Positions 1 to 9,423 of a DNA stretch of 64,000 nt are shown piece after piece (the first letter of the stretch is position 1; every line of letters begins with the position of its first letter). Location: the sequence record MW812343.1. One strand, 5' to 3'. Made by a program: the position numbers and the translations under genes. The notes beneath the pieces were generated by a model. The model did no database searches, was not told the origin of the DNA, and saw only the letters and a list, made by a program, of their open reading frames with translations.

Positions 1-474
1 ACCACGATTGCGTACGACGGCAAAACTCTGGCGTCCGATAGCCAGTCGACTCAGGGTAATATCCGTGTGTCGAACACCGCGGTGAAAATCTTTGCCAGCG
101 GCGAGGGCGATGACTGGGCTATCGAGGGTAAGAAAATCGCGGCTTTTGGCATTGCGGGTAATCTGAACGCAGCCAACGACCTCCGTCGTGCGATGTCCTC
201 CTTCGCCGGTCACCATGCAGGCGACCCTTTCGAAGCCGGTGTCACGTTCGCCTTCATCGCGATTGCCAAAGACCGTACGGTGTTTGTTGGCGGGAAGTAT
301 TCCGACGAACCACGTTCGTGGGTCATGGAAGCCCAAACGCCGGTTGCGGTCGGTAGCGGAGGCGACTTCGCTTTGGGCGCGATGGCCGCAGGCGTTTCTG
401 CTGAGGATGCTGTGAGGATTGCATCGAAGTTCGATGTGAATACCAACGATAGCGTCTCGTGCATCCCTTGCTAG
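1..474 (+). CDS. HslV/proteasome-like Ntn-hydrolase peptidase (5'-truncated by window edge)
   Basis: Frame 1 is open from base 1 and reads TTIAYDGKTLASDSQ (N-terminal Thr, A-x-D-S motif), later VAVGSGGDFALGAM, typical of HslV-family Thr peptidases. The ATG probably lies just upstream of the window. Confidence 0.7.
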   Translation, partial: TTIAYDGKTLASDSQSTQGNIRVSNTAVKIFASGEGDDWAIEGKKIAAFGIAGNLNAANDLRRAMSSFAGHHAGDPFEAGVTFAFIAIAKDRTVFVGGKYSDEPRSWVMEAQTPVAVGSGGDFALGAMAAGVSAEDAVRIASKFDVNTNDSVSCIPC

Positions 475-482
475 GAGGACTG

Positions 483-821
483 ATGTCCATTCAAGAAAAA
501 CCACTGATGGTGATTTACAACCGGAAATATACTCTGGACGAAATCACTAACGCGTTAGGTAACCAACGTGTCCCGAGCATCCCAATTCTGAAGGATGCCG
601 TTGACAACGTTCAGATTCACCAATGGGAAGGTACCAATCACTGTACAGTGGCTGTGCTAACTACCCGTGGACATGTCTGCACGGTGGATACTTGGGTTGA
701 GCCTAACGCTGAAAACCTGTACAGAGTGCTGAACGGCGCTTTTGAGATGGCGTTGAAGTCTGCCGCCCGCAGTTGGCTGGGCGCGCAAATCAACAGCTTG
801 TCTGATAACTGCGTGCTTTGA
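483..821 (+). CDS. hypothetical protein
   Basis: ORF 459-821; ATG 483 preferred because GGAGGA precedes it. Confidence 0.75.
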   Translation: MSIQEKPLMVIYNRKYTLDEITNALGNQRVPSIPILKDAVDNVQIHQWEGTNHCTVAVLTTRGHVCTVDTWVEPNAENLYRVLNGAFEMALKSAARSWLGAQINSLSDNCVL

Positions 822-852
822 AAGTCTAATTACAAGACTACCTTGTGATATG
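821..852 (+). promoter_or_regulatory. putative phage promoter for tRNA-Trp transcript (AAAGTCTAATTACAAGA ... TATG)
   Basis: 17-mer identical to 4006-4022, with TATG ending 31 nt downstream in both copies; resembles phiKZ middle (AAnnnTTAC) and late (TATG) elements. Confidence 0.6.
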
Positions 853-876
853 CTGAGAAGTACGTAAATGAATTTT

Positions 877-953
877 GGGGGAGTAGTTCAATTGGCGAGA
901 GCGTCGGATTCCAAATCCGGTTGTTGCAGGTTCGAGTCCTGTCTCCCCTGCCA
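877..953 (+). tRNA. trnW: tRNA-Trp(CCA)
   Basis: Cloverleaf, loop TT-CCA-AA, GGTTCGAGTCC T arm, encoded CCA. Confidence 0.95.
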
Positions 954-1019
954 CATTTAGCCAGCAGGCTCAGGTTTCATCCAACATGACTAAGAAATGT
1001 CAATCGGTGGAGAAAAACC

Positions 1020-1247
1020 ATGAATCTGTATTTGCTAGAACGTGAAGACGATGTCGGTTACGACGAGTTTGATTCCATAGTCGTTGCAGCTCCTTCGGAG
1101 GATGCAGCGCGCGCAACGAAGCCCGGCTGGCGAGGGCGTTGGACTGATGTGTATTGCGACGAAGACGGAGTAATCCTGAGATGCGAACTCATTGGCACTA
1201 CGCACTTAGAAGCGGGCATCGTCCATGCATCGTTCAACGCAGGCTGA
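1020..1247 (+). CDS. small acidic hypothetical phage protein
   Basis: 75 aa ORF, GGAG RBS, followed by GGTGGGC-TTCG-GCCCACC hairpin. Confidence 0.75.
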   Translation: MNLYLLEREDDVGYDEFDSIVVAAPSEDAARATKPGWRGRWTDVYCDEDGVILRCELIGTTHLEAGIVHASFNAG

Positions 1248-1277
1248 ATACCGGTGGGCTTCGGCCCACCACACCTT

Positions 1278-1351
1278 GGGACGCTGGCCGAGTGGTTAGG
1301 CGCTGGATTGCAAATCCTGTTACCGCGGTTCAATTCCGCGGCGTCCCTCCA
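1278..1351 (+). tRNA. trnC: tRNA-Cys(GCA)
   Basis: GGGACGC/GCGTCCC acceptor, U discriminator, loop TT-GCA-AA, CCA. Confidence 0.93.
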
Positions 1352-1388
1352 ATTTCCTGTCTCGCCCGACAGGACATCTTTACAAAAC

Positions 1389-1470
1389 CCGTAGAGCCTT
1401 TCGGGGGTGTAGCTAGTTGGAGTGGTTGTCACTCTACGGTCTTTCACTCCTGGGCGCTGGCTCACCCACC
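1389..1470 (+). ncRNA. candidate pseudoknotted/long-hairpin RNA or structured leader upstream of terB-like gene
   Basis: Hairpin 1405-1467 (GGGTG/CACCC, AGCTAG/CTGGCT, GGAGTG/CACTCC); CCGTAGAG 1389-1396 is complementary to CTCTACGG 1432-1439 in its loop. Confidence 0.4.
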
Positions 1471-1488
1471 TAAAGGAAATTGATTATC

Positions 1489-1914
1489 ATGTTCGGAATG
1501 TTCAAAAAACGCGCTAACCGTGCTGTGACTGACATCAAAAAATTCGAAAAGCGTGACCTGGCTCAGGCCGTGGTTAATGCTGCCTATCTGGTTGCCTACG
1601 CTGATGGCGAACTGGAAGCCTCTGAGAAAGCGAAAATCGAACAAGTGCTGCGCGCTAACCCAGTGCTGGCAAACTTCCAGGGCGAACTGAACCAGATCGC
1701 TGCAACTATCATCGCTCAGCTGGAAGCGGACATCGGCATTGGCCGTCGTGCTGCTCTGCGTGAAATCAGCGATGTGAAAGGCGACCAGCGTGAATGTGAA
1801 GACGTGCTGGATGTAGCGATTGCGATCGCTAAAGCTGATGGCGAAATCGAACCGGAAGAAGAAGCGGTCCTGAAACAGATCGCTGAAGCTCTGGGTCTGC
1901 GTTACGACGCGTAA
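1489..1914 (+). CDS. terB: TerB-family (tellurite resistance-like) protein
   Basis: Duplicated A-x-ADG-x-x-x-x-E-x-x motif (AYADGELEASEK ... AKADGEIEPEEE); AAAGGA RBS before ATG 1489. Confidence 0.85.
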   Translation: MFGMFKKRANRAVTDIKKFEKRDLAQAVVNAAYLVAYADGELEASEKAKIEQVLRANPVLANFQGELNQIAATIIAQLEADIGIGRRAALREISDVKGDQRECEDVLDVAIAIAKADGEIEPEEEAVLKQIAEALGLRYDA

Positions 1915-1917
1915 GCC

Positions 1918-2100
1918 ATGAAGCTGAAAACCAAGTTATACATCGTGGCCGCGTTGCTACTGATGCTGCTTGGCAACTTCGTTGGGCGGGCATTCACGGT
2001 GCTCGCCTACGCAGCTGTGGTCGGCGTCGTAGCGTATCTGGCCTGGCCTGTCATCAAGAAGTTTGCGGCAAAGTCGCAGGCGAAGGTGAAAGGTAAGTAG
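1918..2100 (+). CDS. small membrane protein (two hydrophobic segments, basic tail)
   Basis: 60 aa, 3 nt after terB stop, hydrophobic stretches. Confidence 0.75.
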   Translation: MKLKTKLYIVAALLLMLLGNFVGRAFTVLAYAAVVGVVAYLAWPVIKKFAAKSQAKVKGK

Positions 2101-2106
2101 TAATTC

Positions 2107-2140
2107 GGTGCGGGGGTCGTTCCCTCCGCACCACCTTTTT
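2107..2140 (+). terminator. rho-independent terminator
   Basis: GGTGCGGGGG/CCCTCCGCACC hairpin followed by T-run. Confidence 0.65.
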
Positions 2141-2166
2141 ATTCTCATCTAAAAATAGGTATAACC

Positions 2167-3006
2167 ATGAGAAAGGTGCTTTTCGGAATCCTTGCAGCGT
2201 TGACGTTTAGCATGTCCGCAGTCGCGGCAGATGAAGTTGTGATTACTACTGGCCAACAGGGCCTGACCTATAACTCGGTCTACGGCGTTAATCTGGCTGG
2301 TGCTATCAGCGAGTTTGGTACCCGTGCCCGTGTCATCCCTTCTAAAGGGTCGTTAGACAACCTCGATAAGGTTGCCGCCGGTGAAGCCCAGATTGGCTTT
2401 ACGCAGGCAGATGCTTTCCAGTTCTGGCGCGCTAAGCACCCGAACGAAGCGCAGAACGTTGACATCGTTGGTCAACTGGCGCGTGAGTGTGTCTGGGTTG
2501 CTGTTAAGAAAGACGGCAAAATCAAAGACACCAAAGATTTAACCGATGGCGCGAAAATCGCCGTGGGTGAACCGGACTCTGGTTCGTACGCCAGTTGGCA
2601 ATACCTGCAACAGTTGGTGAAAGAGTATTCCAAAGCGGAAACTTACGCCAAAGGCGGTATCCGTTCGTTGTCCAAAGTGGCAACGGGTGAATACGACGCT
2701 TTCCTGTGGGTCTCTGCACCGGGCAAAACCAATAAGTTCCTCGAAGCGGTCAATCAAGACAGTTCTGGTTTAGAGCTGATTGACATGAGTTCGTGGAGCG
2801 TCAACGACAAACTGCCGAATGGTCAGTCCGTTTACACGAAAGAAACGGTCAAGACAGACAAGACCGCGTTCTTCGGTAACAAAGTCGACGTTCCATGCAC
2901 CACCACACTCGTTGTAGCCAATACCGAGGCCGGTGATGATTTACTCGAAACCGTTTCCACCATCCTCCTGAAAAATAATTCACGAGTGATGGGAGAGAAA
3001 AAATAA
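2167..3006 (+). CDS. TAXI-family TRAP transporter solute-binding protein (secreted)
   Basis: Signal peptide ending AVA-A; ITTGQQGLTY, SKGSLDNLDKV, QIGFTQAD, GAKIAVGEPDSGS match TAXI SBP motifs (TG..GG.Y; GS.EN...L; A.VQ.D; G..GSG). Confidence 0.8.
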   Translation: MRKVLFGILAALTFSMSAVAADEVVITTGQQGLTYNSVYGVNLAGAISEFGTRARVIPSKGSLDNLDKVAAGEAQIGFTQADAFQFWRAKHPNEAQNVDIVGQLARECVWVAVKKDGKIKDTKDLTDGAKIAVGEPDSGSYASWQYLQQLVKEYSKAETYAKGGIRSLSKVATGEYDAFLWVSAPGKTNKFLEAVNQDSSGLELIDMSSWSVNDKLPNGQSVYTKETVKTDKTAFFGNKVDVPCTTTLVVANTEAGDDLLETVSTILLKNNSRVMGEKK

Positions 3007-3011
3007 ATAAG

Positions 3012-3635
3012 TTTGTACTGACCCAGTACAACCTTCGGGCTGGGTAGGGTTGATGTCCCTACCTGCACGGTGTTCGTTAAGGCTGGTAACGTTCGCTAAG
3101 ACCTGTCGCACACCCCTAAGTCGACAGTAGCCGGTTACACAAAGCACTATCGCGTAAGCTGTGAAGTTTCCCCGGTAGGTAACCGACCGTTCACGATCTC
3201 ATTAGGTGAGCAAATAATCTATGCAAGGACTTCTAGGATTCGCGCTCGGTATGATGGGTAGCTTACGCCGCTTCATCAGACAGTTACGAATCTGGAAACT
3301 TGCCCATTACTGGTTTACAGGCGAAAAGGCTTCTCGTGAGAGAGCCACATGCAAACTGCGTATTTACATTAGTATGTTCACGGCTGTGAGCATAGGTCAA
3401 GCACCGGAACGATAAGCCGGACAGCTACGCCTGTAAAATACAATCTGAAAATCATAATGGGATTCAGTTCCCAGATTTGAAAAGGCGACTGTGTGTCGTC
3501 GGAGATAACCCCCCGTCGTGGACTAGGTTATCCCAAAGGTAATGTGAAAGGGGTTGGTGCTTGGAGGCGCTAAGACCGGCGGATACGCTGGCTCAGAAGA
3601 AGAAGTCCACCAACCCCATTCTCACCTAAGTAACT
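3012..3635 (+). ncRNA. candidate large ornate non-coding RNA (~620 nt)
   Basis: Intergenic, with multiple perfect helices: TTAGGTGAG 3202-3210/CTCACCTAA 3621-3629, TTTACAGGCG 3314-3323/CGCCTGTAAA 3428-3437, GGGGTTGGTG 3550-3559/CACCAACCCC 3608-3617, GATAACC/GGTTATC; a GTGA tetraloop; a possible pseudoknot. Confidence 0.7.
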
Positions 3636-3678
3636 CTTTTTACAAGACGTTACTTATATATGCGAAAGCGAGGTGAAC

Positions 3679-4005
3679 ATGGGAACGTATCATGAAGGTC
3701 CTGAAAGCACGGTGACACACCGTAGCCATGAATACTCTGTGGATGCATTGCTGGATATAGCGGAACGTCATAGCCTCGTTCAAATTCCAGTGTCTAGGAT
3801 AGAATGGATTTTAAACGAGACTACGCTCGAAGACGAGCGAGTTAAGAGTGCAGATACAGATTATCCCATTATTGTGCTGCACGAAGGAAGTTTGTATATT
3901 GTATTAGATGGTGCCCATCGGCTTGCGAAGGCGGTTGCCGAAGGCAAGGATACCATTGCAGCCAAGATACTTGTGCCTGCTAATCTACCGAAACCGGTAC
4001 GATAA
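3679..4005 (+). CDS. ParB/sulfiredoxin N-terminal-like domain protein
   Basis: PIIV...YIVLDGAHRLAKA motif (DGxHR); GAGGTG RBS before ATG 3679. Confidence 0.75.
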   Translation: MGTYHEGPESTVTHRSHEYSVDALLDIAERHSLVQIPVSRIEWILNETTLEDERVKSADTDYPIIVLHEGSLYIVLDGAHRLAKAVAEGKDTIAAKILVPANLPKPVR

Positions 4006-4037
4006 AAAGTCTAATTACAAGAATACACTGTATTATG
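4006..4037 (+). promoter_or_regulatory. putative phage promoter for main tRNA/ncRNA operon
   Basis: AAAGTCTAATTACAAGA identical to 821-837; TATG at 4034-4037 with the same spacing. Confidence 0.6.
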
Positions 4038-4116
4038 TCGGAAACCCGATTTGATGTTGCACAGGGCGTTACGCTGCGGCGTTTGCCGGTGTGCAGGGTT
4101 AGGTCGGGGTTCTGGC
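4037..4116 (+). ncRNA. 80-nt hairpin RNA at 5' end of tRNA operon
   Basis: GTCGGAAACCCGATTT pairs with AGGTCGGGGTTCTGGC (15 of 16 pairs incl. GU); inner TGCAC/GTGCA stem. Confidence 0.5.
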
Positions 4117-4124
4117 ACCTATTC

Positions 4125-4210
4125 GGGGGTGTTCCAGAGCGGTCAAATGGAGCAGACTGTAAATCTGTTGACTTCGGTCTTCGGTGGTTCAAATCCATCC
4201 ACCCCCACCA
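4125..4210 (+). tRNA. trnY: tRNA-Tyr(GTA)
   Basis: Type II cloverleaf, loop CT-GTA-AA, variable arm GACTTCGGTC, CCA. Confidence 0.95.
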
Positions 4211-4277
4211 AATACAAGAACGTCGGCCTGCGGTTAAGGACTAGCCTCCTTTTCTAGCGCCGATGGGATTCCTTCCG

Positions 4278-4357
4278 TCTGCGGGGAGTATCGTTCGGTC
4301 AGGGCGAAGCAATCCTGACCCGAGTGTGTTGTAGGCTACAACATGCAAGCAGAACCA
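4278..4357 (+). ncRNA. two-hairpin RNA with ACCA 3' tail
   Basis: TCTGC/GCAGA closing stem plus A-CCA; hairpins GGTCAGG/CCTGACC and GTGTGTTGTA/TACAACATGC; followed by the AACA spacer seen after true tRNAs. Confidence 0.5.
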
Positions 4358-4363
4358 AACAGT

Positions 4364-4438
4364 TGGGGTATAGCCAAGCGGTAAGGCCCAGGGCTTTGAT
4401 CCCTGTATGCCTAGGTTCGATTCCTAGTGCCCCTGCCA
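4364..4438 (+). tRNA. trnQ: tRNA-Gln(TTG)
   Basis: TGGGGTATAGCCAAGCGGTAAGGC 5' end typical of Gln, loop CT-TTG-AT, CCA. Confidence 0.93.
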
Positions 4439-4444
4439 AACAAC

Positions 4445-4527
4445 GGAAGTAAATCTCGCTGCTTCGGAAACTCATGGTGAAAAACCCGTGACCTTCCAGG
4501 CCGGTGCTATACCGGATGCTTCCACCA
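4445..4527 (+). ncRNA. non-canonical tRNA-like RNA (8-nt anticodon loop, divergent T loop, ACCA)
   Basis: GGAAGTA/TGCTTCC acceptor plus A-CCA; T-arm-like CCGG-TGCTATA-CCGG; TCATGG/CCGTGA stem with TGAAAAAC loop. Confidence 0.6.
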
Positions 4528-4533
4528 AACAAT

Positions 4534-4754
4534 GGTACCTGTCACAGCAGCCCTTGAGGCTTACGCGAAGATGACTGGCCGCCCATTTTTACCGGGTAAC
4601 ACATTCCTGCCTGCGTGCTATTGCCGCTAAGGTTTGTCCCTGGTGTCGTGCGTCATTCGGGTCTACCCATGCTCTGCGGAGTGTGCGCTGATGTCTCGAT
4701 AAACGCCATAGGGCCGCCTTGAGAACTCCGTGGAATTCGGAGGGGTACCACCCA
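4534..4754 (+). ncRNA. 221-nt RNA with tRNA-like ends (tmRNA-like topology)
   Basis: GGTACCT/GGGTACC acceptor, adjacent T-arm CTCCG-TGGAATT-CGGAG, tail ACCCA; 9-bp helix 4577-4586/4708-4718 in place of the anticodon arm. Confidence 0.55.
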
Positions 4755-4825
4755 TTCTTGTGTTTCCTTATCCTGAAGACATTCGTAAGACAAATCTATT
4801 CATGGTCGAGGAAGCACAGAACCCA
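4755..4825 (+). ncRNA. long-stem hairpin RNA ending CCCA
   Basis: TTCTTGTGTTTCCTT/GAGGAAGCACAGAA 14-bp stem with one bulge, then CCCA. Confidence 0.45.
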
Positions 4826-4828
4826 TTT

Positions 4829-4903
4829 AGGACTGTAGTTCAGTGGGAGAACGCCGCCCTGTCACGGCGGAGGTCGCGGGTTCGAAACCCGTCAGTCCTG
4901 CCA
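4829..4903 (+). tRNA. trnD: tRNA-Asp(GTC)
   Basis: AGGACTG/CAGTCCT, loop CT-GTC-AC, G discriminator, CCA. Confidence 0.95.
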
Positions 4904-4911
4904 GTTTCAAA

Positions 4912-4987
4912 TGCGTCTTAGCTCAGTTGGTAGAGCGCACCCCTGATAAGGGTGAGGTCACTGGTTCAAGTCCAGTAGATGCAACCA
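4912..4987 (+). tRNA. trnI: tRNA-Ile(GAT)
   Basis: Canonical D arm AGCTCAGTTGGTAGAGC, loop CT-GAT-AA, CCA. Confidence 0.95.
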
Positions 4988-4993
4988 AACAAC

Positions 4994-5071
4994 GGTGTAT
5001 GTAGTTCAGTTGGTTAGAATTCCGGCTTGTGACGTCGGAGGTCGAGAGTTCAAGTCTCTCCATACACCCCA
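4994..5071 (+). tRNA. trnH: tRNA-His(GTG)
   Basis: G-1 paired with C73, loop TT-GTG-AC, CCA. Confidence 0.95.
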
Positions 5072-5077
5072 AACAAT

Positions 5078-5153
5078 TCTCCCGTCATCTAGCGGTCTAG
5101 GATACCGGCCTTTCACGTCGGGCACACGAGTTCAAATCTCGTCGGGAGAACCA
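5078..5153 (+). tRNA. trnE: tRNA-Glu(TTC)
   Basis: TCTCCCG/CGGGAGA, loop CT-TTC-AC, CCA. Confidence 0.95.
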
Positions 5154-5158
5154 TTTAT

Positions 5159-5249
5159 AGAGAATTGACTGAGTTGGTTTAAGGTGCTCCCCTGCTAAGG
5201 GAGTGTATGCGAAAGTGTACCATTGGTTCGAATCCAATATTCTCTGCCA
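5159..5249 (+). tRNA. trnS: tRNA-Ser(GCT)
   Basis: Type II, loop CT-GCT-AA, long variable arm, G discriminator, CCA. Confidence 0.95.
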
Positions 5250-5252
5250 AAC

Positions 5253-5322
5253 AACGGTAAGCAAAACTGTGATGCACTGTGCTCGCGAACAGACTAGGTG
5301 GGTTAGAATCCCATAACCGTTG
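5253..5322 (+). pseudogene. degenerate tRNA-like element (CGC triplet in 8-nt loop)
   Basis: AACGGT/ACCGTT acceptor, GTGGG-TTAGAAT-CCCAT T arm, CTGT/ACAG stem, no CCA. Confidence 0.5.
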
Positions 5323-5364
5323 ACCGTGTTCTCTTGCTGTGGGAAATAGAAGCGAACGTAGAAA

Positions 5365-5443
5365 CGCCGGTTAGCTCAAAGCTTAGAGCGTCTCATCTTC
5401 GGATGAGAAGGTTGGGGGCGCAACCCGAATTCCCTATCGGCAA
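5365..5443 (+). ncRNA. tRNA-shaped RNA with UUCG-capped stem replacing the anticodon loop
   Basis: Canonical TAGCTCA..AGAGC D arm; TCTCATC-TTCG-GATGAGA; GCCGGT/ATCGGC acceptor; expanded T loop. Confidence 0.55.
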
Positions 5444-5509
5444 TGGCCTGCTTGTCAGGATTAGAAACATCTACGTGGATGGGAACTTCTACAGCGAGAA
5501 CAAAACAAT

Positions 5510-5582
5510 GGGAGTATTGCCCACAGTGGCACCGGCAAAGGTTTCGTACCTTGCGGGTTGGGCGGAAGCCCGATACTCCCCC
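5510..5582 (+). ncRNA. tRNA-shaped RNA with 8-bp acceptor and GGAA-tetraloop T arm
   Basis: GGGAGTAT/ATACTCCC; TGCC/GGCA arm; AAGG-TTTCGTA-CCTT arm; TGGGC-GGAA-GCCCG arm; preceded by AAACAAT spacer. Confidence 0.55.
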
Positions 5583-5826
5583 GAACGCTGGCCTTCTGGC
5601 CGATACAGTGAAAGCTTACCCTTGCCGTTGATCACCTCTTCTGCTGCTGCTGCCAACACACTGTATCACCGGAATCAGTCCTGCCTTAAATGGCAAGCGT
5701 TCACCCATTCGGTTCCCCAAGGCGGCTTGGGACATTATCTCTCGGCTCTGTTGGGTAATGTCGTGGTTAACCTTTTCTCAGATAGATATTATCACCAAGA
5801 TAATACAACCTATTTGAGAGGTAGAC

Positions 5827-6345
5827 ATGAAAGATCTAATACTACCACCTGGTGATTGGGCACCGTGTCCGGATGCCCCTGACCTGTTTATGGTCTCCCG
5901 TAAAGGAGAACTGTTTTCACTTCGTTCGAAAAGAATAGTATCCCAAAGCCGGTCAGGAAACGGGTATGTATCTCACGTCACGAAGGTTGGTGGGCGTAAA
6001 GGGAAGAACTTGGTATTGAAACCGCATATCCAAGTCGCCAAGGCTTTTCATCCCAACCCTGAAAATAAACCAGAGGTTAACCACAAAAACGGAATCAAGA
6101 CTTGCAATGAGGATTGGAACGTTGAGTGGGCAACCAGACAGGAAAACGTAGACCATTCTATCGAGAACAATCTCAGAAAATCTAATGGTCTTAAATTATC
6201 AGGCCCTGAAATCCGGGAATTGTTAGAAAGTCCGATAGGTAATGTGAGAGAGTGTGCAGAAGCATTGAACGTACATCACACTACAGTAGTGAAGATTAGA
6301 AATAATCCAGCGCATTACTTATTGATGACCATGACTAAAAAGTAA
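5827..6345 (+). CDS. HNH homing endonuclease (NUMOD4/HNH_3-like)
   Basis: HIQVAKAFHPNPENKPEVNHKNGIKTCNEDWNVEWATRQEN motif; inserted in the tRNA cluster. Confidence 0.9.
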   Translation: MKDLILPPGDWAPCPDAPDLFMVSRKGELFSLRSKRIVSQSRSGNGYVSHVTKVGGRKGKNLVLKPHIQVAKAFHPNPENKPEVNHKNGIKTCNEDWNVEWATRQENVDHSIENNLRKSNGLKLSGPEIRELLESPIGNVRECAEALNVHHTTVVKIRNNPAHYLLMTMTKK

Positions 6346-6350
6346 ACAAT

Positions 6351-6442
6351 GGCTCCGTGGTGAAATCGGTAAACACAGGCTTTGAATAGCTGTCCAACGA
6401 TTGTATAATCGCGTGGTGTAGGTTCGAGTCCTACCGGAGCAA
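6351..6442 (+). pseudogene. degenerate type II tRNA (Leu/Ser-like body, distorted anticodon arm, no CCA)
   Basis: GCTCCG/CGGAGC acceptor, GTGGTGAAATCGGTAAACAC D arm, GGTTCGAGTCC T arm, irregular arm around TTTGAAT. Confidence 0.55.
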
Positions 6443-6443
6443 G

Positions 6444-6538
6444 AACGATGAAGTTAGAGGCATAAACACCCGACTCATAATCGGATAGTGGTTTACCCGG
6501 CGGGTACTCCTTCGCAGGTTCGAATCCTGTCATCGTTC
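6444..6538 (+). tRNA. atypical tRNA-Met/Ile2(CAT) with ~28-nt variable arm
   Basis: AACGATG/CATCGTT acceptor, loop CT-CAT-AA, GCAGG-TTCGAAT-CCTGT T arm, extra TACCC/GGGTA hairpin, no encoded CCA. Confidence 0.7.
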
Positions 6539-6549
6539 GCCCTTATTTA

Positions 6550-6625
6550 GACTCTGTAGCTCAGTTGGTAGAGCGGATGACTGTTAATCATCAGGTCACA
6601 GGTTCAAGCCCTGTCAGAGTCGCCA
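6550..6625 (+). tRNA. trnN: tRNA-Asn(GTT)
   Basis: GACTCTG/CAGAGTC, loop CT-GTT-AA, G discriminator, CCA. Confidence 0.95.
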
Positions 6626-6628
6626 CAT

Positions 6629-6698
6629 TTTGCATTACCCGAGTCCCGAATGACATTCCGGAAAAATATCATCCATGGTCAAGGGTAATGCAGAACCA
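6629..6698 (+). ncRNA. 12-bp-stem RNA with ACCA tail
   Basis: TTTGCATTACCC/GGGTAATGCAGA followed by ACCA. Confidence 0.5.
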
Positions 6699-6702
6699 AA
6701 TT

Positions 6703-6762
6703 CCCGGCCCTTGCAGATAAAGCTTACCTGCATTAGCTGTCCCCTGCGGGGGTCGGGTACCA
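6703..6762 (+). ncRNA. 8-bp-stem RNA with TACCA tail
   Basis: CCCGGCCC/GGGTCGGG then T-ACCA; internal TGCAG/CTGCA hairpin. Confidence 0.45.
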
Positions 6763-6896
6763 CCTTTGTTCGTTTTGTTTTTTTCTTTCAATTGCCTGGC
6801 GGTATTGGTGGGAACAAAACGAATGAAGCCCTAGCGGGGGAAAAGCCGCTAACAACAACAGAAGCAGTAAAAACAGAAGTAAAAGCAGGAGTAGTT

Positions 6897-7709
6897 ATGT
6901 TTACTATCTTACGTAAAATCAATGGTAACCGCACACCAACCGAACACGAGTCCCCAACGCTGGGTGACACAAAGTCTCAAGTGTTCAAAGATGCGATGTC
7001 GCTACTGACCGAATCCAACAACGTGCATAACTGCATGGATTCTGGGATGGATGCGAAGCCGTGGATTGACGGCAAACCCAAACCGATTGAGGAATGGGTA
7101 GAGCGCTTTAATGCAGCGTTCGGCGCAACTGACAGAGATAACCAAGAACTGGTTGATTTGATCAGTGAGTTGGCACCGGGCATGTTCGACAAAACCAACG
7201 CGCGTTTTGCATCAGACTTCGGTCAACTGGAAGAAGCCTTCCTGAAGAACACCGGACAGACTATCATCTGGAAATGCCCGAAAGGGTTGCCGATTGATAT
7301 TCAGTTCGAAAACATCCCACGCCAAAGTGTAGAAACCCTACACACTACTCTTGACTTCATCGAAGCCGATGAGTTGAAGTTTGCTGTGTTCAACAGCAAA
7401 GCGCTGTGGGATGGGTATAACTCTGCTGAACTGTTTGGCGGGGTAGCCACCGAAATTTCCTCGGTAGAACTCCAGCACGTTTATCACGACGATACGGCAA
7501 TGCCGCAAGAAGCGGTACTCAAAGCCAGTCGTCGTGGCGACCGTACGTTAGACCAGGTTATCGGGGTGCTCGCTTATGGCAGCTCTGAAGAACCTGACCC
7601 GACGTCGGGCAATGTGCCGGTCACAGTGATGACCTACGAGTTTATCTACCAAGGCGATGAAGTCTACATCACGAACCGTCACGGTAAGACTGTGGACTCC
7701 ATCCGTTAA
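6897..7709 (+). CDS. hypothetical protein (270 aa)
   Basis: ATG 6897 with GCAGGAG RBS; the track's upstream extension runs through structured RNA and is unlikely to be coding. Confidence 0.8.
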   Translation: MFTILRKINGNRTPTEHESPTLGDTKSQVFKDAMSLLTESNNVHNCMDSGMDAKPWIDGKPKPIEEWVERFNAAFGATDRDNQELVDLISELAPGMFDKTNARFASDFGQLEEAFLKNTGQTIIWKCPKGLPIDIQFENIPRQSVETLHTTLDFIEADELKFAVFNSKALWDGYNSAELFGGVATEISSVELQHVYHDDTAMPQEAVLKASRRGDRTLDQVIGVLAYGSSEEPDPTSGNVPVTVMTYEFIYQGDEVYITNRHGKTVDSIR

Positions 7710-7813
7710 CGAATTAGCATGCTCGCTAATACCCGCCCTGAGGATTGGCCTCCTCGCGCTTGAAGGGCGACTCTCCTGTAGTACGCTTTGTAAGTCGACG
7801 TAACTCCGGTACG

Positions 7814-7856
7814 CCCTCTCCCCGAAAAGGGAGAGGGTAGTATCGTATATTTTTTT
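7814..7856 (+). terminator. terminator
   Basis: CCCTCTCCC/GGGAGAGGG hairpin with downstream T-run. Confidence 0.6.
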
Positions 7857-7862
7857 GGATAT

Positions 7863-7877
7863 ATATTACCTAGGTGA
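7863..7877 (+). promoter_or_regulatory. putative early promoter ATATTAYC-N3-GTGA
   Basis: One of six plus-strand intergenic copies; resembles the phiKZ early TATTAC motif. Confidence 0.65.
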
Positions 7878-7926
7878 GATTAAACTATAATCTTTAACCT
7901 ATCATTAGACCTTCGAGGATAAACTT

Positions 7927-8910
7927 ATGCATTACGCTCCAATGTCAGCACATGAAACCTTCGCCGCTCGTGGTTACAGCCCAGAAGAAGGCAAACGTAT
8001 TCGTGGCTATCTTCCGCGTCGCTTTGGCGACATCAGTAACGCCCTCCCTTTAACGAACGCAGAGTTCTGGCTGGCGTACGAGTGCATGAAGCACTACAAC
8101 GATAACAGTCGTGAGCGTGGTCGCTTCTACGCAGTGGGTCCATTCAATTTCCAATCCAATGGGAAAGTCAATTACCGCTCTGAAAAACTCAACGAAGATT
8201 TCTCCATGGTGGAATTCATTCGCCACTTCGGTGATACGGTGTTCACCGACTTCGACGCTGAGTTGGGTATGAAAGTTCCACGTACCAATGCAGACGGTTC
8301 GTTGGTCATGAAGAATCGCATGGTGGCCACCCGCTTAGTTGAGATTGAGAAACAGGCACAACCGCAGTCGGAAGACTTCTCGAGCTGGCATACCGCGAGT
8401 TGGATGAACTTCCCAGTCGGTTCACTCTCTTTACCGCCGACAGGTATGATCACGCCTGAAACGGTTCTGATGGCGAGTCTGCACGGCATGATGGTGCAGG
8501 AGTATGTTAATACACAAGCCGGGCGTATGTTGCACCCGACTCTTGATTATAAGTGGGTTGCGACCTACGTGTATCTGAAGCGGTTATACCACGCGCGTGA
8601 CCGCCAGTTCGGTCAAGACTACCACAGTGTTCGTAGCACCATTGAGATGAACCTGCGGTTCCGCACAAGCACCGCGATGTACCCAAGTGATGTCATGACG
8701 CCCCCGCATTATTTCCACATTGATGCGGATCGTGTTATGTCCGCAAACGGTATTCTGAACCTGCCACGTCTGCACAATACGAAACCCATGGGCTTTTACG
8801 AGTCCCTGTATCGCTTCAACAACAATGGCCATGTTGCCGCCATCACAACCATTCCCACTGAACTTTTCAATGAGTACAGTGAAGAAGAATGGAAAGCAGT
8901 ATTAGCATAA
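7927..8910 (+). CDS. hypothetical protein (327 aa)
   Basis: Long ORF, GAGGA RBS, own promoter and terminator. Confidence 0.85.
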   Translation: MHYAPMSAHETFAARGYSPEEGKRIRGYLPRRFGDISNALPLTNAEFWLAYECMKHYNDNSRERGRFYAVGPFNFQSNGKVNYRSEKLNEDFSMVEFIRHFGDTVFTDFDAELGMKVPRTNADGSLVMKNRMVATRLVEIEKQAQPQSEDFSSWHTASWMNFPVGSLSLPPTGMITPETVLMASLHGMMVQEYVNTQAGRMLHPTLDYKWVATYVYLKRLYHARDRQFGQDYHSVRSTIEMNLRFRTSTAMYPSDVMTPPHYFHIDADRVMSANGILNLPRLHNTKPMGFYESLYRFNNNGHVAAITTIPTELFNEYSEEEWKAVLA

Positions 8911-8914
8911 CTCT

Positions 8915-8947
8915 AGAGCGGGGGGAAAACCCCGCTTTATTTTTTTT
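8915..8947 (+). terminator. terminator
   Basis: AGAGCGGGG/CCCCGCTTT hairpin plus T-run. Confidence 0.7.
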
Positions 8948-8982
8948 ACTTGAGTACCTGATTTATATAGGAGGGTAACATC

Positions 8983-9423
8983 ATGAAATCCAATTTGGCT
9001 TATAGCTTCAACGTCGTTCCGTTTTATCAACCCATTGAAATGATTCGTGCACTGACTGATGGCTACTTGCCAGAGACATTCATCCCAAAGGGTCGATATG
9101 ATGAAATGTTACTGGATACCGTATTCCCCATCATTCTTAACATGCCGATGTTCCGCGAGTTTGCGTCTAATCTGACTTACCAAGAAGGTACCGCCTTCCG
9201 TAAGGGCGATGATGTGCCAGTGATTACTACCACGTACAACATCTCACGCGACGAAGCAAATGCCATGATGCGCGACCCGGATGTGTTCTTCCGATTCCTG
9301 ACATCCATGGCTGAAGCGCTCGAAAAACGCGCCCTGCCGTTTGAGGAAATCTTTGCGGTGTTACTTGACGCCATTTCAGCCAGCGACTATGCCATGTTCC
9401 ACAACATGGGCAGTCTGCACTAA
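8983..9423 (+). CDS. hypothetical protein
   Basis: 146 aa, GGAGG RBS. Confidence 0.85.
   Translation: MKSNLAYSFNVVPFYQPIEMIRALTDGYLPETFIPKGRYDEMLLDTVFPIILNMPMFREFASNLTYQEGTAFRKGDDVPVITTTYNISRDEANAMMRDPDVFFRFLTSMAEALEKRALPFEEIFAVLLDAISASDYAMFHNMGSLH

Follow-up and report, generated by a model that had tools for sequence, protein, structure and literature searches.

Comparative sequence analysis indicates that a genuine folded RNA of about 590 nucleotides (nt), conserved in evolution, is encoded in a gap near the start of the genome of Erwinia phage pEa_SNUABM_6 (MW812343.1, Machinavirus), on the plus strand, the strand of every RNA feature described below. The window analyzed here is the first 64 kb of that genome; the RNA occupies positions 3041-3621 and lies beside an island of transfer RNA (tRNA) genes. 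Because neither the window nor nine homologs gave a match to Rfam 15, the RNA is, as far as covariance models can tell, not a detectable member of any family in that database and represents a new class. Within it lies a small open reading frame (ORF) of 64 codons (3221..3415, MQGLLGF...GQAPER), the first half of which, judging by its substitution pattern, is evolving as protein and the second half as RNA. On balance, and with confidence only a little above even, we interpret 3041-3621 as a bifunctional module that would serve both as a folded RNA and as a messenger beside the tRNA island.

A conserved folded RNA next to phage tRNA genes

The gap has a minimum free energy (MFE) of -230.6 kcal/mol, compared with -196 +/- 7 kcal/mol in dinucleotide shuffles (z = -4.8), and contains 15 perfect stems of at least 8 base pairs (bp) against 3.4 in the shuffles, a four- to fivefold excess. 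The initial annotation of this stretch, which described the gap as packed with helices, was right in this respect. Thermodynamics alone does not fix the strand, because the minus strand folds about equally well (z = -4.6). Across the cells of the alignment described below, G-U pairs number 199 and A-C juxtapositions 40, and the RNA is therefore on the plus strand, a minus-strand RNA being ruled out by this asymmetry.

Homolog collection and a covariation check, both suggested in the initial annotation, yielded homologs in four genera and a well-supported fold. The intergenic regions of 21 loci were aligned, with the full stretch 3035-3640 alignable in all four genera, and the resulting 22-sequence alignment (A1) has a lowest pairwise identity of about 63%. 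An RNAalifold consensus on A1 showed compensatory changes in 34 of 73 pairs. A refined structure of 113 pairs, assembled by domain-wise folding, is paired in 90.1% of cells, compared with 33-43% when the partners are slid by 1-3 columns. Compensatory double changes occur in 56 of the 113 pairs (13-20 in the slid controls), and the covariation score is 0.369 (0.056-0.079 slid); none of 500 column shuffles reached the observed values. The fold z-scores of the separate parts are -4.6 for the 3' domain, -1.0 for the linker together with the N-terminal half of the ORF, and -1.6 for the 5' domain; the first two values agree with the domain model.

The helices listed by the initial annotation can all be formed in this sequence, and comparison with the homologs separates them into several groups. 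Pairing is fully Watson-Crick in 3202-3210/3621-3629 (9/9), 3314-3323/3428-3437 (10/10), 3550-3559/3608-3617 (10/10), 3504-3510/3526-3532 (7/7) and the proposed pseudoknot 3518-3524/3604-3610 (7/7), while 3252-3261/3300-3309 has seven Watson-Crick and three G-U pairs. The GNRA arm GGCUUCUC-GUGA-GAGAGCC (3328-3346) and the arm CCGGCG-GAUA-CGCUGG (3576-3591) are likewise present. Covariation accompanies conservation in helix 3550-3559/3608-3617, in the CCGGCG/CGCUGG arm and in 3504-3510/3526-3532, the last of these being a variable module. Fifteen of the 22 sequences retain the GNRA arm, with covariation in three clades. Helix 3314-3323/3428-3437 is also kept in 15 of 22 sequences but is identical in all of them, and the Wellington/Erskine clade uses a different closing helix.

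The other proposals did not survive comparison. The 9-bp helix joining the 5' and 3' parts (3202-3210/3621-3629) is not conserved family-wide and, by duplex z-scores, is either confined to the Machina clade or due to chance. The same holds for the pseudoknot; it competes with the best-supported helix of the RNA, to which its 3' strand belongs, and the module containing its 5' strand is replaced in other members. Neither 3252-3261/3300-3309 nor the ATGTTCAC/GTGAGCAT arm is conserved. Taken together, this set of four is 53% paired, against 34-42% when slid, and shows zero covariation.

The element at 3041-3621 is kept in 62 phage records from four genera, Machinavirus, Seoulvirus, Wellingtonvirus and Erskinevirus, and is single-copy in the window. 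By BLAST, the whole gap is 88-95% identical in Machina-like phages, the 3' ~220 nt are about 70% identical in SPN3US-like Seoulvirus phages (of Salmonella and Escherichia coli) and in Proteus phage 7, and only fragments are matched in Erskinevirus and Wellingtonvirus. A profile search with nhmmer recovered the element at full length in each of the four genera, with E values from 1e-107 to 1e-167, and also retrieved four further IMG/VR lineages and nine metagenome contigs. No homolog beyond the four genera was found by BLAST with divergent queries (Kwan and an uncultivated virus genome, UViG), by scanning IMG/VR, JGI metagenomes and 185,579 prokaryotic genomes for motifs (in which seven metagenome and two genome matches were judged to be chance), or by tblastn with the peptide and a locus search with a peptide profile. 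A host origin of the element was considered and rejected, a search of 5,426 E. coli genomes having given zero matches. A full-text literature search found no paper that describes the RNA.

Rfam 15 (4227 families) was searched with cmscan over positions 1-9000, over the gap itself (3000-3680) at E<=10 with permissive filters, and over the corresponding region of nine diverse homologs at E<=5. The first of these searches returned tRNAs and chance matches only, the second only a chance microRNA match, and the third no match at all. The covariance models without a match include those for GOLLD, ROOL, OLE, HEARO, RNase P, group I and II introns, 6S, the signal recognition particle (SRP) RNA, T-box elements and riboswitches. 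ARAGORN reported tRNAs only and no transfer-messenger RNA (tmRNA), and the ORF has an AUG of its own. The initial annotation had left open whether the RNA was a member of a class such as GOLLD or ROOL or a new one; the second alternative stands, as neither GOLLD nor ROOL was matched even at E<=10.

A small reading frame inside the RNA

The initial annotation had also called this a large non-coding RNA. It is large and structured, but the gap is not wholly non-coding, because the ORF at 3221-3415 is kept in all homologs and its codons 1-33 show protein-type substitution. The ORF covers about a third of the 620-nt gap. An in-frame, ATG-started ORF of 55-64 codons is found in 21 of 21 phage loci and in all four metagenomic lineages, and every one of these terminates at the same aligned UAA. 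Conservation of the peptide is found in the N-terminal ~33 residues, with the end motif R-x-W-x-[LF]-x-x-[YV]-[WR]-x-[TS]-G-x-G.

The proportions of synonymous (pS) and nonsynonymous (pN) differences were obtained by Nei-Gojobori counts in 16 within-clade pairs. Codons 1-33 gave pS = 0.553 and pN = 0.213, a ratio of 0.39, whereas the same nucleotides gave 0.90 and 1.56 when read in the two remaining frames. From codon 34 to the end, all codon positions change slowly and no frame is distinct (pS 0.11, pN 0.09, ratio 0.79). It is because the low, frame-specific ratio is found in codons 1-33 and is absent after them that we read the first half as protein-like and the second as RNA-like. The C-terminal half overlaps RNA helices, and where the GNRA hairpin has undergone compensatory change, the peptide differs as well (EKASRERA, DGFSRKGP and GGKSREGS).

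The peptide matches PHROG 26199 (E = 4e-43) and has zero Pfam matches. With the family alignment as input, AlphaFold2 places a helix at residues 2-33 with a predicted local distance difference test (pLDDT) of 75-84, consistently across clades, and gives the C-terminal half a pLDDT of about 50. The N-terminal half is predicted to be a hydrophobic or amphipathic helix ending in a Trp-rich motif. Gene callers treat the locus inconsistently, reporting a coding sequence (CDS), nothing, or a CDS on the opposite strand. A CDS is called at the ORF in the records of Machina, Huxley, pSal-SNUABM-04, ChrisDB and Asesino, and those of Kwan (L020:1466-1675) and Wellington carry an opposite-strand CDS across the RNA. 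That the ORF might be a leader peptide enriched in codons matching the phage's own tRNAs was also considered, and dropped when inspection of the peptide by eye showed no obvious enrichment.

Anatomy of the RNA and its locus

A hairpin directly after the stop codon of the upstream gene, UUGUACUG-ACC-CAGUACAA (3012..3030), appears in the MFE fold and in a scan for terminator-like structures and delimits the conserved element on its 5' side. Its sequence is not itself conserved; other clades have an analogous hairpin after their upstream gene, such as GUGGGC-UUCG-GCCCAC in Seoulvirus. The 5' domain (3041..3191), drawn from RNAalifold and pair counts, begins with hairpin H1 (3041-3049/3057-3065), which has a conserved UUGAUGU loop and compensatory changes in six of nine pairs. 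A multi-helix junction follows, closed by P1 (3066-3071/3186-3191) and including a clade-variable, optional hairpin (3075-3079/3087-3091). Helix H4 (3103-3109/3120-3127) is 99% paired, with six of seven pairs covarying and a conserved loop, A-ACC-NN-UAA-R-YC. Helices H5 (3132-3138/3179-3185; compensatory changes in four of seven pairs) and H6 (3147-3152/3173-3178; four of six) carry a near-invariant bulge, ACACAAAGCAC. The MFE fold of the single sequence reproduces the comparative fold of this domain. The linker that follows (3192-3313) has no conserved structure, and its part upstream of the ORF (3192..3220) contains AGGUGA at 3204-3209, a sequence resembling a Shine-Dalgarno (SD) site 11 nt before the AUG.

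The 3' domain (3311-3621) opens with a middle subdomain (3311..3440) in which helix 3314-3323/3428-3437 encloses three hairpins. One is the GNRA hairpin (3328-3335/3340-3346); the next, at 3373-3380/3385-3392 in this phage, varies with the clade. Between clades, covariation is seen in the GNRA hairpin and in hairpins of GUCC/GGAC type. The third, the stop-codon hairpin (3400-3408/3416-3426), holds in its loop the UAA (3413-3415), the columns of which are invariant. This hairpin (AGCACCGG...UAAGCCG, 3400-3426) shows a faint likeness to the tRNA-Arg of Klebsiella phage FBKp24 (L060:5265-5292), in the region of its D-stem and anticodon arm. A tRNA-like origin was rejected, as the nhmmer match is not significant (E = 1.7) and tRNA models match nothing there.

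Beyond the middle subdomain come a near-invariant single strand, ACAAUCUGA (3440-3448, invariant columns), and the hairpin UGGGA-UUCAGU-UCCCA (3458-3473), which is 100% paired. Loop bases of the latter (3464-3468) can pair with 3298-3302 inside the ORF. This pairing is tentatively a tertiary contact: it is 97% paired against 8-51% when slid and shows a U-A to C-G swap in nine sequences, with one mismatch in the window copy, and it was selected post hoc from a scan for further covarying stacks. The hairpin GGCGAC-UGUGU-GUCGUC (3484..3500, helices 15 and 16) has compensatory changes in four of six pairs. It is followed by a variable peripheral hairpin (3501..3534) that exists in at least four interchangeable versions, of which this phage has version A. 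The versions do not track phylogeny (L009, L002, L023, L019 and L018 compared). pSal-SNUABM-04, SPN3US and the IMG/VR contig UViG L023 share an identical version B, GGCGCGGUACCUCAUACGGCCGGUACGCC, in RNAs that overall are only about 67% identical, which suggests either recombinational exchange of the module or a strongly selected binding site. That the variable hairpin might be a dispersed repeat was ruled out, since it is single-copy in the window.

The RNA ends in a large 3' hairpin of 76 nt (3546..3621), with an outer stem at 3546-3562/3603-3621, an inner stem-loop at 3570-3581/3586-3596, and conserved internal loops, GGAGGCGCUAAGA and AGAAGAAGAAGUC. Helix 19 of this hairpin is 97% paired with compensatory changes in seven of 16 pairs, and helix 21 has them in three of eight. 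Conservation in the RNA is highest here, with BLAST similarity extending to Seoulvirus and Proteus phage 7. The terminal 3' hairpin of Kwan and Wellington is strongly diverged compared with all other members. The 3' tail (3622..3660) is made up of CUCACCUAA (3621-3629), then a small hairpin, and then TATATATG (3655-3662); pairing of CUCACCUAA with the SD region is possible in the Machina clade alone, and no U-tract terminator follows the 3' hairpin. The octamer TATATATG has one copy in the 64-kb window, yet it turns up again around the RNA locus in several clades: L003, L004, L010 and L011 have it at the small-ORF start, L017 and L020 after the RNA. In the SNU4/Caitlin/ChrisDB clade, its ATG is the start codon of the small ORF. 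The single occurrence in 64 kb rules out a general phage promoter; a local promoter or processing signal could account for the octamer. A scan for sigma-70 promoter-like sites and intrinsic terminators gave nothing above shuffles.

The surroundings are as the initial annotation gave them, with a TAXI gene upstream, a gene annotated as ParB-like downstream and flanking tRNA genes, in the genome of an enterobacterial jumbo phage of the chimallivirus type. The CDS on the 5' side (2167-3006) encodes a TAXI/NMT1_3 solute-binding protein (Pfam PF16868, E = 6e-17). The CDS on the 3' side (3679-4005) encodes 108 amino acids (aa), is ParB-like according to the annotation in relatives and has zero Pfam matches at E<=0.1; it is restricted to the Machina clade, where it sits between the RNA and the tRNA array. 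According to ARAGORN and Rfam, tRNA-Trp and tRNA-Cys genes lie upstream of the gap, and tRNA-Tyr at 4125 opens the downstream array. Among homologs the upstream neighbor may be TAXI, small ORFs or an 80-aa ORF (Seoulvirus), and the downstream neighbor is, outside the Machina clade, tRNA-Tyr, tRNA-Leu or tRNA-Gly. Despite these changes, all homologs have the RNA module as the first element of the tRNA array, on the same strand. In the Erskinevirus phages Asesino (L019:1576) and phiEaH2 (L018:1575), tRNA-Gly starts at the base right after the last conserved base of the RNA.

Two long matches to the Rfam tRNA model on the plus strand, at 6351-6442 and 6444-6538 (35.6 and 40.9 bits), are probably unannotated long-arm tRNA or tRNA-like genes. 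ARAGORN labels 6350-6443 'tRNA-???', and a hypothetical CDS on the minus strand (6315-6533) overlies both matches in the GenBank record. Homologs of TAXI also occur in two unrelated large phages, FBKp24 (L060; 67% identity) and Pseudaeromonas phage KLEP7 (L061; 49%), and the loci reached through this gene lack the RNA in both. In FBKp24 a tRNA array follows TAXI, with an unannotated stretch of ~750 nt beyond the array (L060:6485-7233), and in KLEP7 an HslV protease gene lies upstream of TAXI. A small ORF after TAXI in FBKp24 was considered as a counterpart and rejected, as it encodes an unrelated membrane peptide.

Possible function, rival explanations and relation to known RNAs

We propose that the module is built from a 150-nt 5' domain, an unstructured linker of ~120 nt bearing the start and ~33 codons, and a 3' domain of ~310 nt, into which the ORF would continue to end at the invariant UAA displayed in a hairpin loop. 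The module would be transcribed together with the tRNA array or just ahead of it, and, where a tRNA abuts, RNase P cleavage of that tRNA would set the 3' end of the RNA. Both co-transcription and RNase P-dependent 3'-end formation are suggested by the position of the module at the head of the array, where it abuts a tRNA in some phages. A ribosome on codons ~32-64 would have to open the long-range helix and its three enclosed hairpins and to terminate in a hairpin loop; since it would open the helices of the folded 3' domain, this fold and translation are likely to be mutually exclusive, as far as the anatomy tells. The RNA may thus alternate between two states, one open and yielding the peptide, the other closed and acting as a stable RNA or ribonucleoprotein, with its own peptide, ribosomes or tRNAs as possible binding partners. 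By analogy with what is suspected for GOLLD and ROOL, a role in the tRNA and translation program of the phage is the most likely one.

Several observations weigh against this interpretation. The 5' domain alone is not thermodynamically exceptional, and although SD-like purine tracts occur, their SD:anti-SD energy across homologs (-2 to -5 kcal/mol) does not surpass that of random windows of the RNA. The C-terminal half of the ORF shows no coding signal, the pairs used in the substitution test overlap and are phylogenetically non-independent, and the ORF is unannotated in this record, in most Seoulvirus records and in most deposited genomes. The closing helix of the middle subdomain differs between clades, which leaves the switch model supported by architecture rather than by an alternative pairing that is conserved.

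Part of the same evidence would suit a large structured RNA that is purely non-coding, an analogue of GOLLD and ROOL in which the ORF is an untranslated by-product of RNA constraints. Very strong covariation, a weak SD, the lack of a coding signal in the C-terminal half, the missing annotation here and in most Seoulvirus records, and a genomic context the same as that of GOLLD and ROOL all fit such an RNA. Yet the AUG and open frame are kept in five diverged clades although the linker and N-terminal half have no conserved structure, synonymous change is 2.6x nonsynonymous change in the ORF frame only, and the predicted helix is consistent across clades, so we allow this explanation an appreciable but clearly minor share of the probability. 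An ordinary small-protein gene, whose long untranslated regions would be cis-regulatory or stability elements of an RNA with no function of its own, seems to us unlikely. The 5' domain could then be a leader resembling a riboswitch or protein operator, and the 3' hairpins a protective end. The conserved ORF lies directly downstream of the 5' domain, the three- or four-way junction has invariant unpaired bases of a kind typical of ligand- or protein-binding leaders, and the 9-bp helix of the Machina clade would be able to sequester the SD region. However, the most conserved nucleotides are in the 3' hairpin past the stop and in the C-terminal half of the ORF, not in the N-terminal half of the protein. 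No SD-sequestering alternative is conserved, no Rfam riboswitch is matched, and 460 nt of conserved structure would be unusual for a 60-aa peptide.

A leader or processing scaffold of the tRNA operon, in which the RNA and translation of its ORF tune read-through or RNase processing of the array, would explain why the module always heads the array on the same strand, why it abuts tRNA-Gly without a spacer in Erskinevirus, and why its stop codon lies within a conserved hairpin loop. We consider it improbable, given that no U-tract terminator follows the 3' hairpin, that in the Machina clade a protein gene lies between the RNA and the tRNAs, that the peptide has no run of regulatory codons, and that FBKp24 and KLEP7 share the TAXI context (FBKp24 the tRNA array as well) but lack the RNA. 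Very little probability attaches to a locus of the type I toxin-antitoxin or lysis-timing kind, with a membrane-active peptide silenced hok-like by its folded mRNA. The hydrophobic or amphipathic, Trp-rich N-terminal helix, the highly structured mRNA and the 5'-3' fold-back over the SD in the Machina clade would agree with it, but that fold-back is not conserved, no conserved antisense promoter or RNA is evident (promoter-like sites being not above shuffles), the helix, with its several charged residues, does not make a clean transmembrane segment in every clade, and the RNA domains are far more elaborate than those of known type I loci. Least credible of all is a diverged GOLLD, ROOL, OLE, HEARO, RNase P RNA, tmRNA or group I/II intron: the comparable size and the same site beside phage tRNA genes are set against zero covariance-model matches (the gap at E<=10, nine homologs at E<=5), the absence of a tmRNA in the ARAGORN output, a different host range and an architecture with an embedded ORF. 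No rival explains as well as the bifunctional module does the combination of a protein-type N-terminal half with RNA-type constraint everywhere else.

The module can be compared with RNAs that combine a conserved fold with a short translated frame on one transcript, such as SgrS/SgrT, RNAIII/hld, SR1/SR1P and tmRNA. The first three are base-pairing regulators and tmRNA acts in ribosome rescue, all with defined targets, whereas this RNA has no known target complementarity, is several times larger than most of these RNAs and has no tRNA-like domain. It resembles hok/sok mRNAs in placing a small hydrophobic peptide in a long, highly folded mRNA and, in the Machina clade only, in a 5'-3' fold-back over the ribosome-binding region. 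It differs from them in that the fold-back is not conserved family-wide, no antisense partner was found, and the flanking RNA domains are conserved far beyond the needs of translational silencing. Species 1 and 2 of the T4 tRNA cluster are stable non-tRNA RNAs of ~120-140 nt that have no ORF and are processed from tRNA transcripts. Like them, the RNA described here is a non-tRNA RNA beside the tRNA cluster of a lytic phage; no homology to them was detected, BLAST finding only the four jumbo-phage genera.

ROOL (RF03087, about 580 nt) and GOLLD (RF01998, about 800 nt) are multi-domain, covariation-supported RNAs of phages and prophages, often located by tRNA islands, with which they may share a transcript (PMC5737381; bioRxiv 10.1101/2024.12.08.627333). 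The RNA described here is likewise large, multi-domain, phage-encoded, beside tRNA genes and possibly co-transcribed, a context that alone does not establish membership. It does not match the ROOL model, with its six multistem junctions as well as three pseudoknots in about 581 nt, or the GOLLD model, with its universally conserved 3' region. In its overall plan it is similar to GOLLD, in which a linker connects a 3' region that is conserved to a 5' region that varies more. Unlike both, it occurs in jumbo phages of Enterobacterales rather than in Lactobacillales, rumen or lake organisms, is absent from the bacterial genomes searched, and carries in its linker a conserved, apparently translated small ORF.

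Large structured RNAs are rare in bacteria and phages, and this one matches GOLLD and ROOL in size, covariation support and tRNA-island context. Both of those RNAs self-assemble into homo-oligomeric cages made of RNA only. What they do is still not known even though cryo-EM structures have recently become available, in part because their hosts are difficult to handle. SPN3US-like phages grow on laboratory strains of Salmonella and E. coli, and an established collection of amber mutants exists for SPN3US (PMC5105663), which makes the role of large phage RNAs beside tRNA genes directly testable. The RNA merits experimental follow-up, the SPN3US/Salmonella system being genetically tractable, and its overlapping protein-constrained and RNA-constrained frame offers a clean natural case of dual coding. 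More tentatively, and as a possibility we rate well below even, it may stand for a class of large multi-domain RNAs not described before, carried by nucleus-forming jumbo phages that infect Salmonella, E. coli, Erwinia and Proteus and working as an RNA or ribonucleoprotein assembly in the tRNA and translation program. Its fold would be gated by translation of its internal peptide, and it would be a functional cousin of GOLLD and ROOL. If so, GOLLD and ROOL would have a functional counterpart that contains its own coding switch and whose hosts are open to full genetics.

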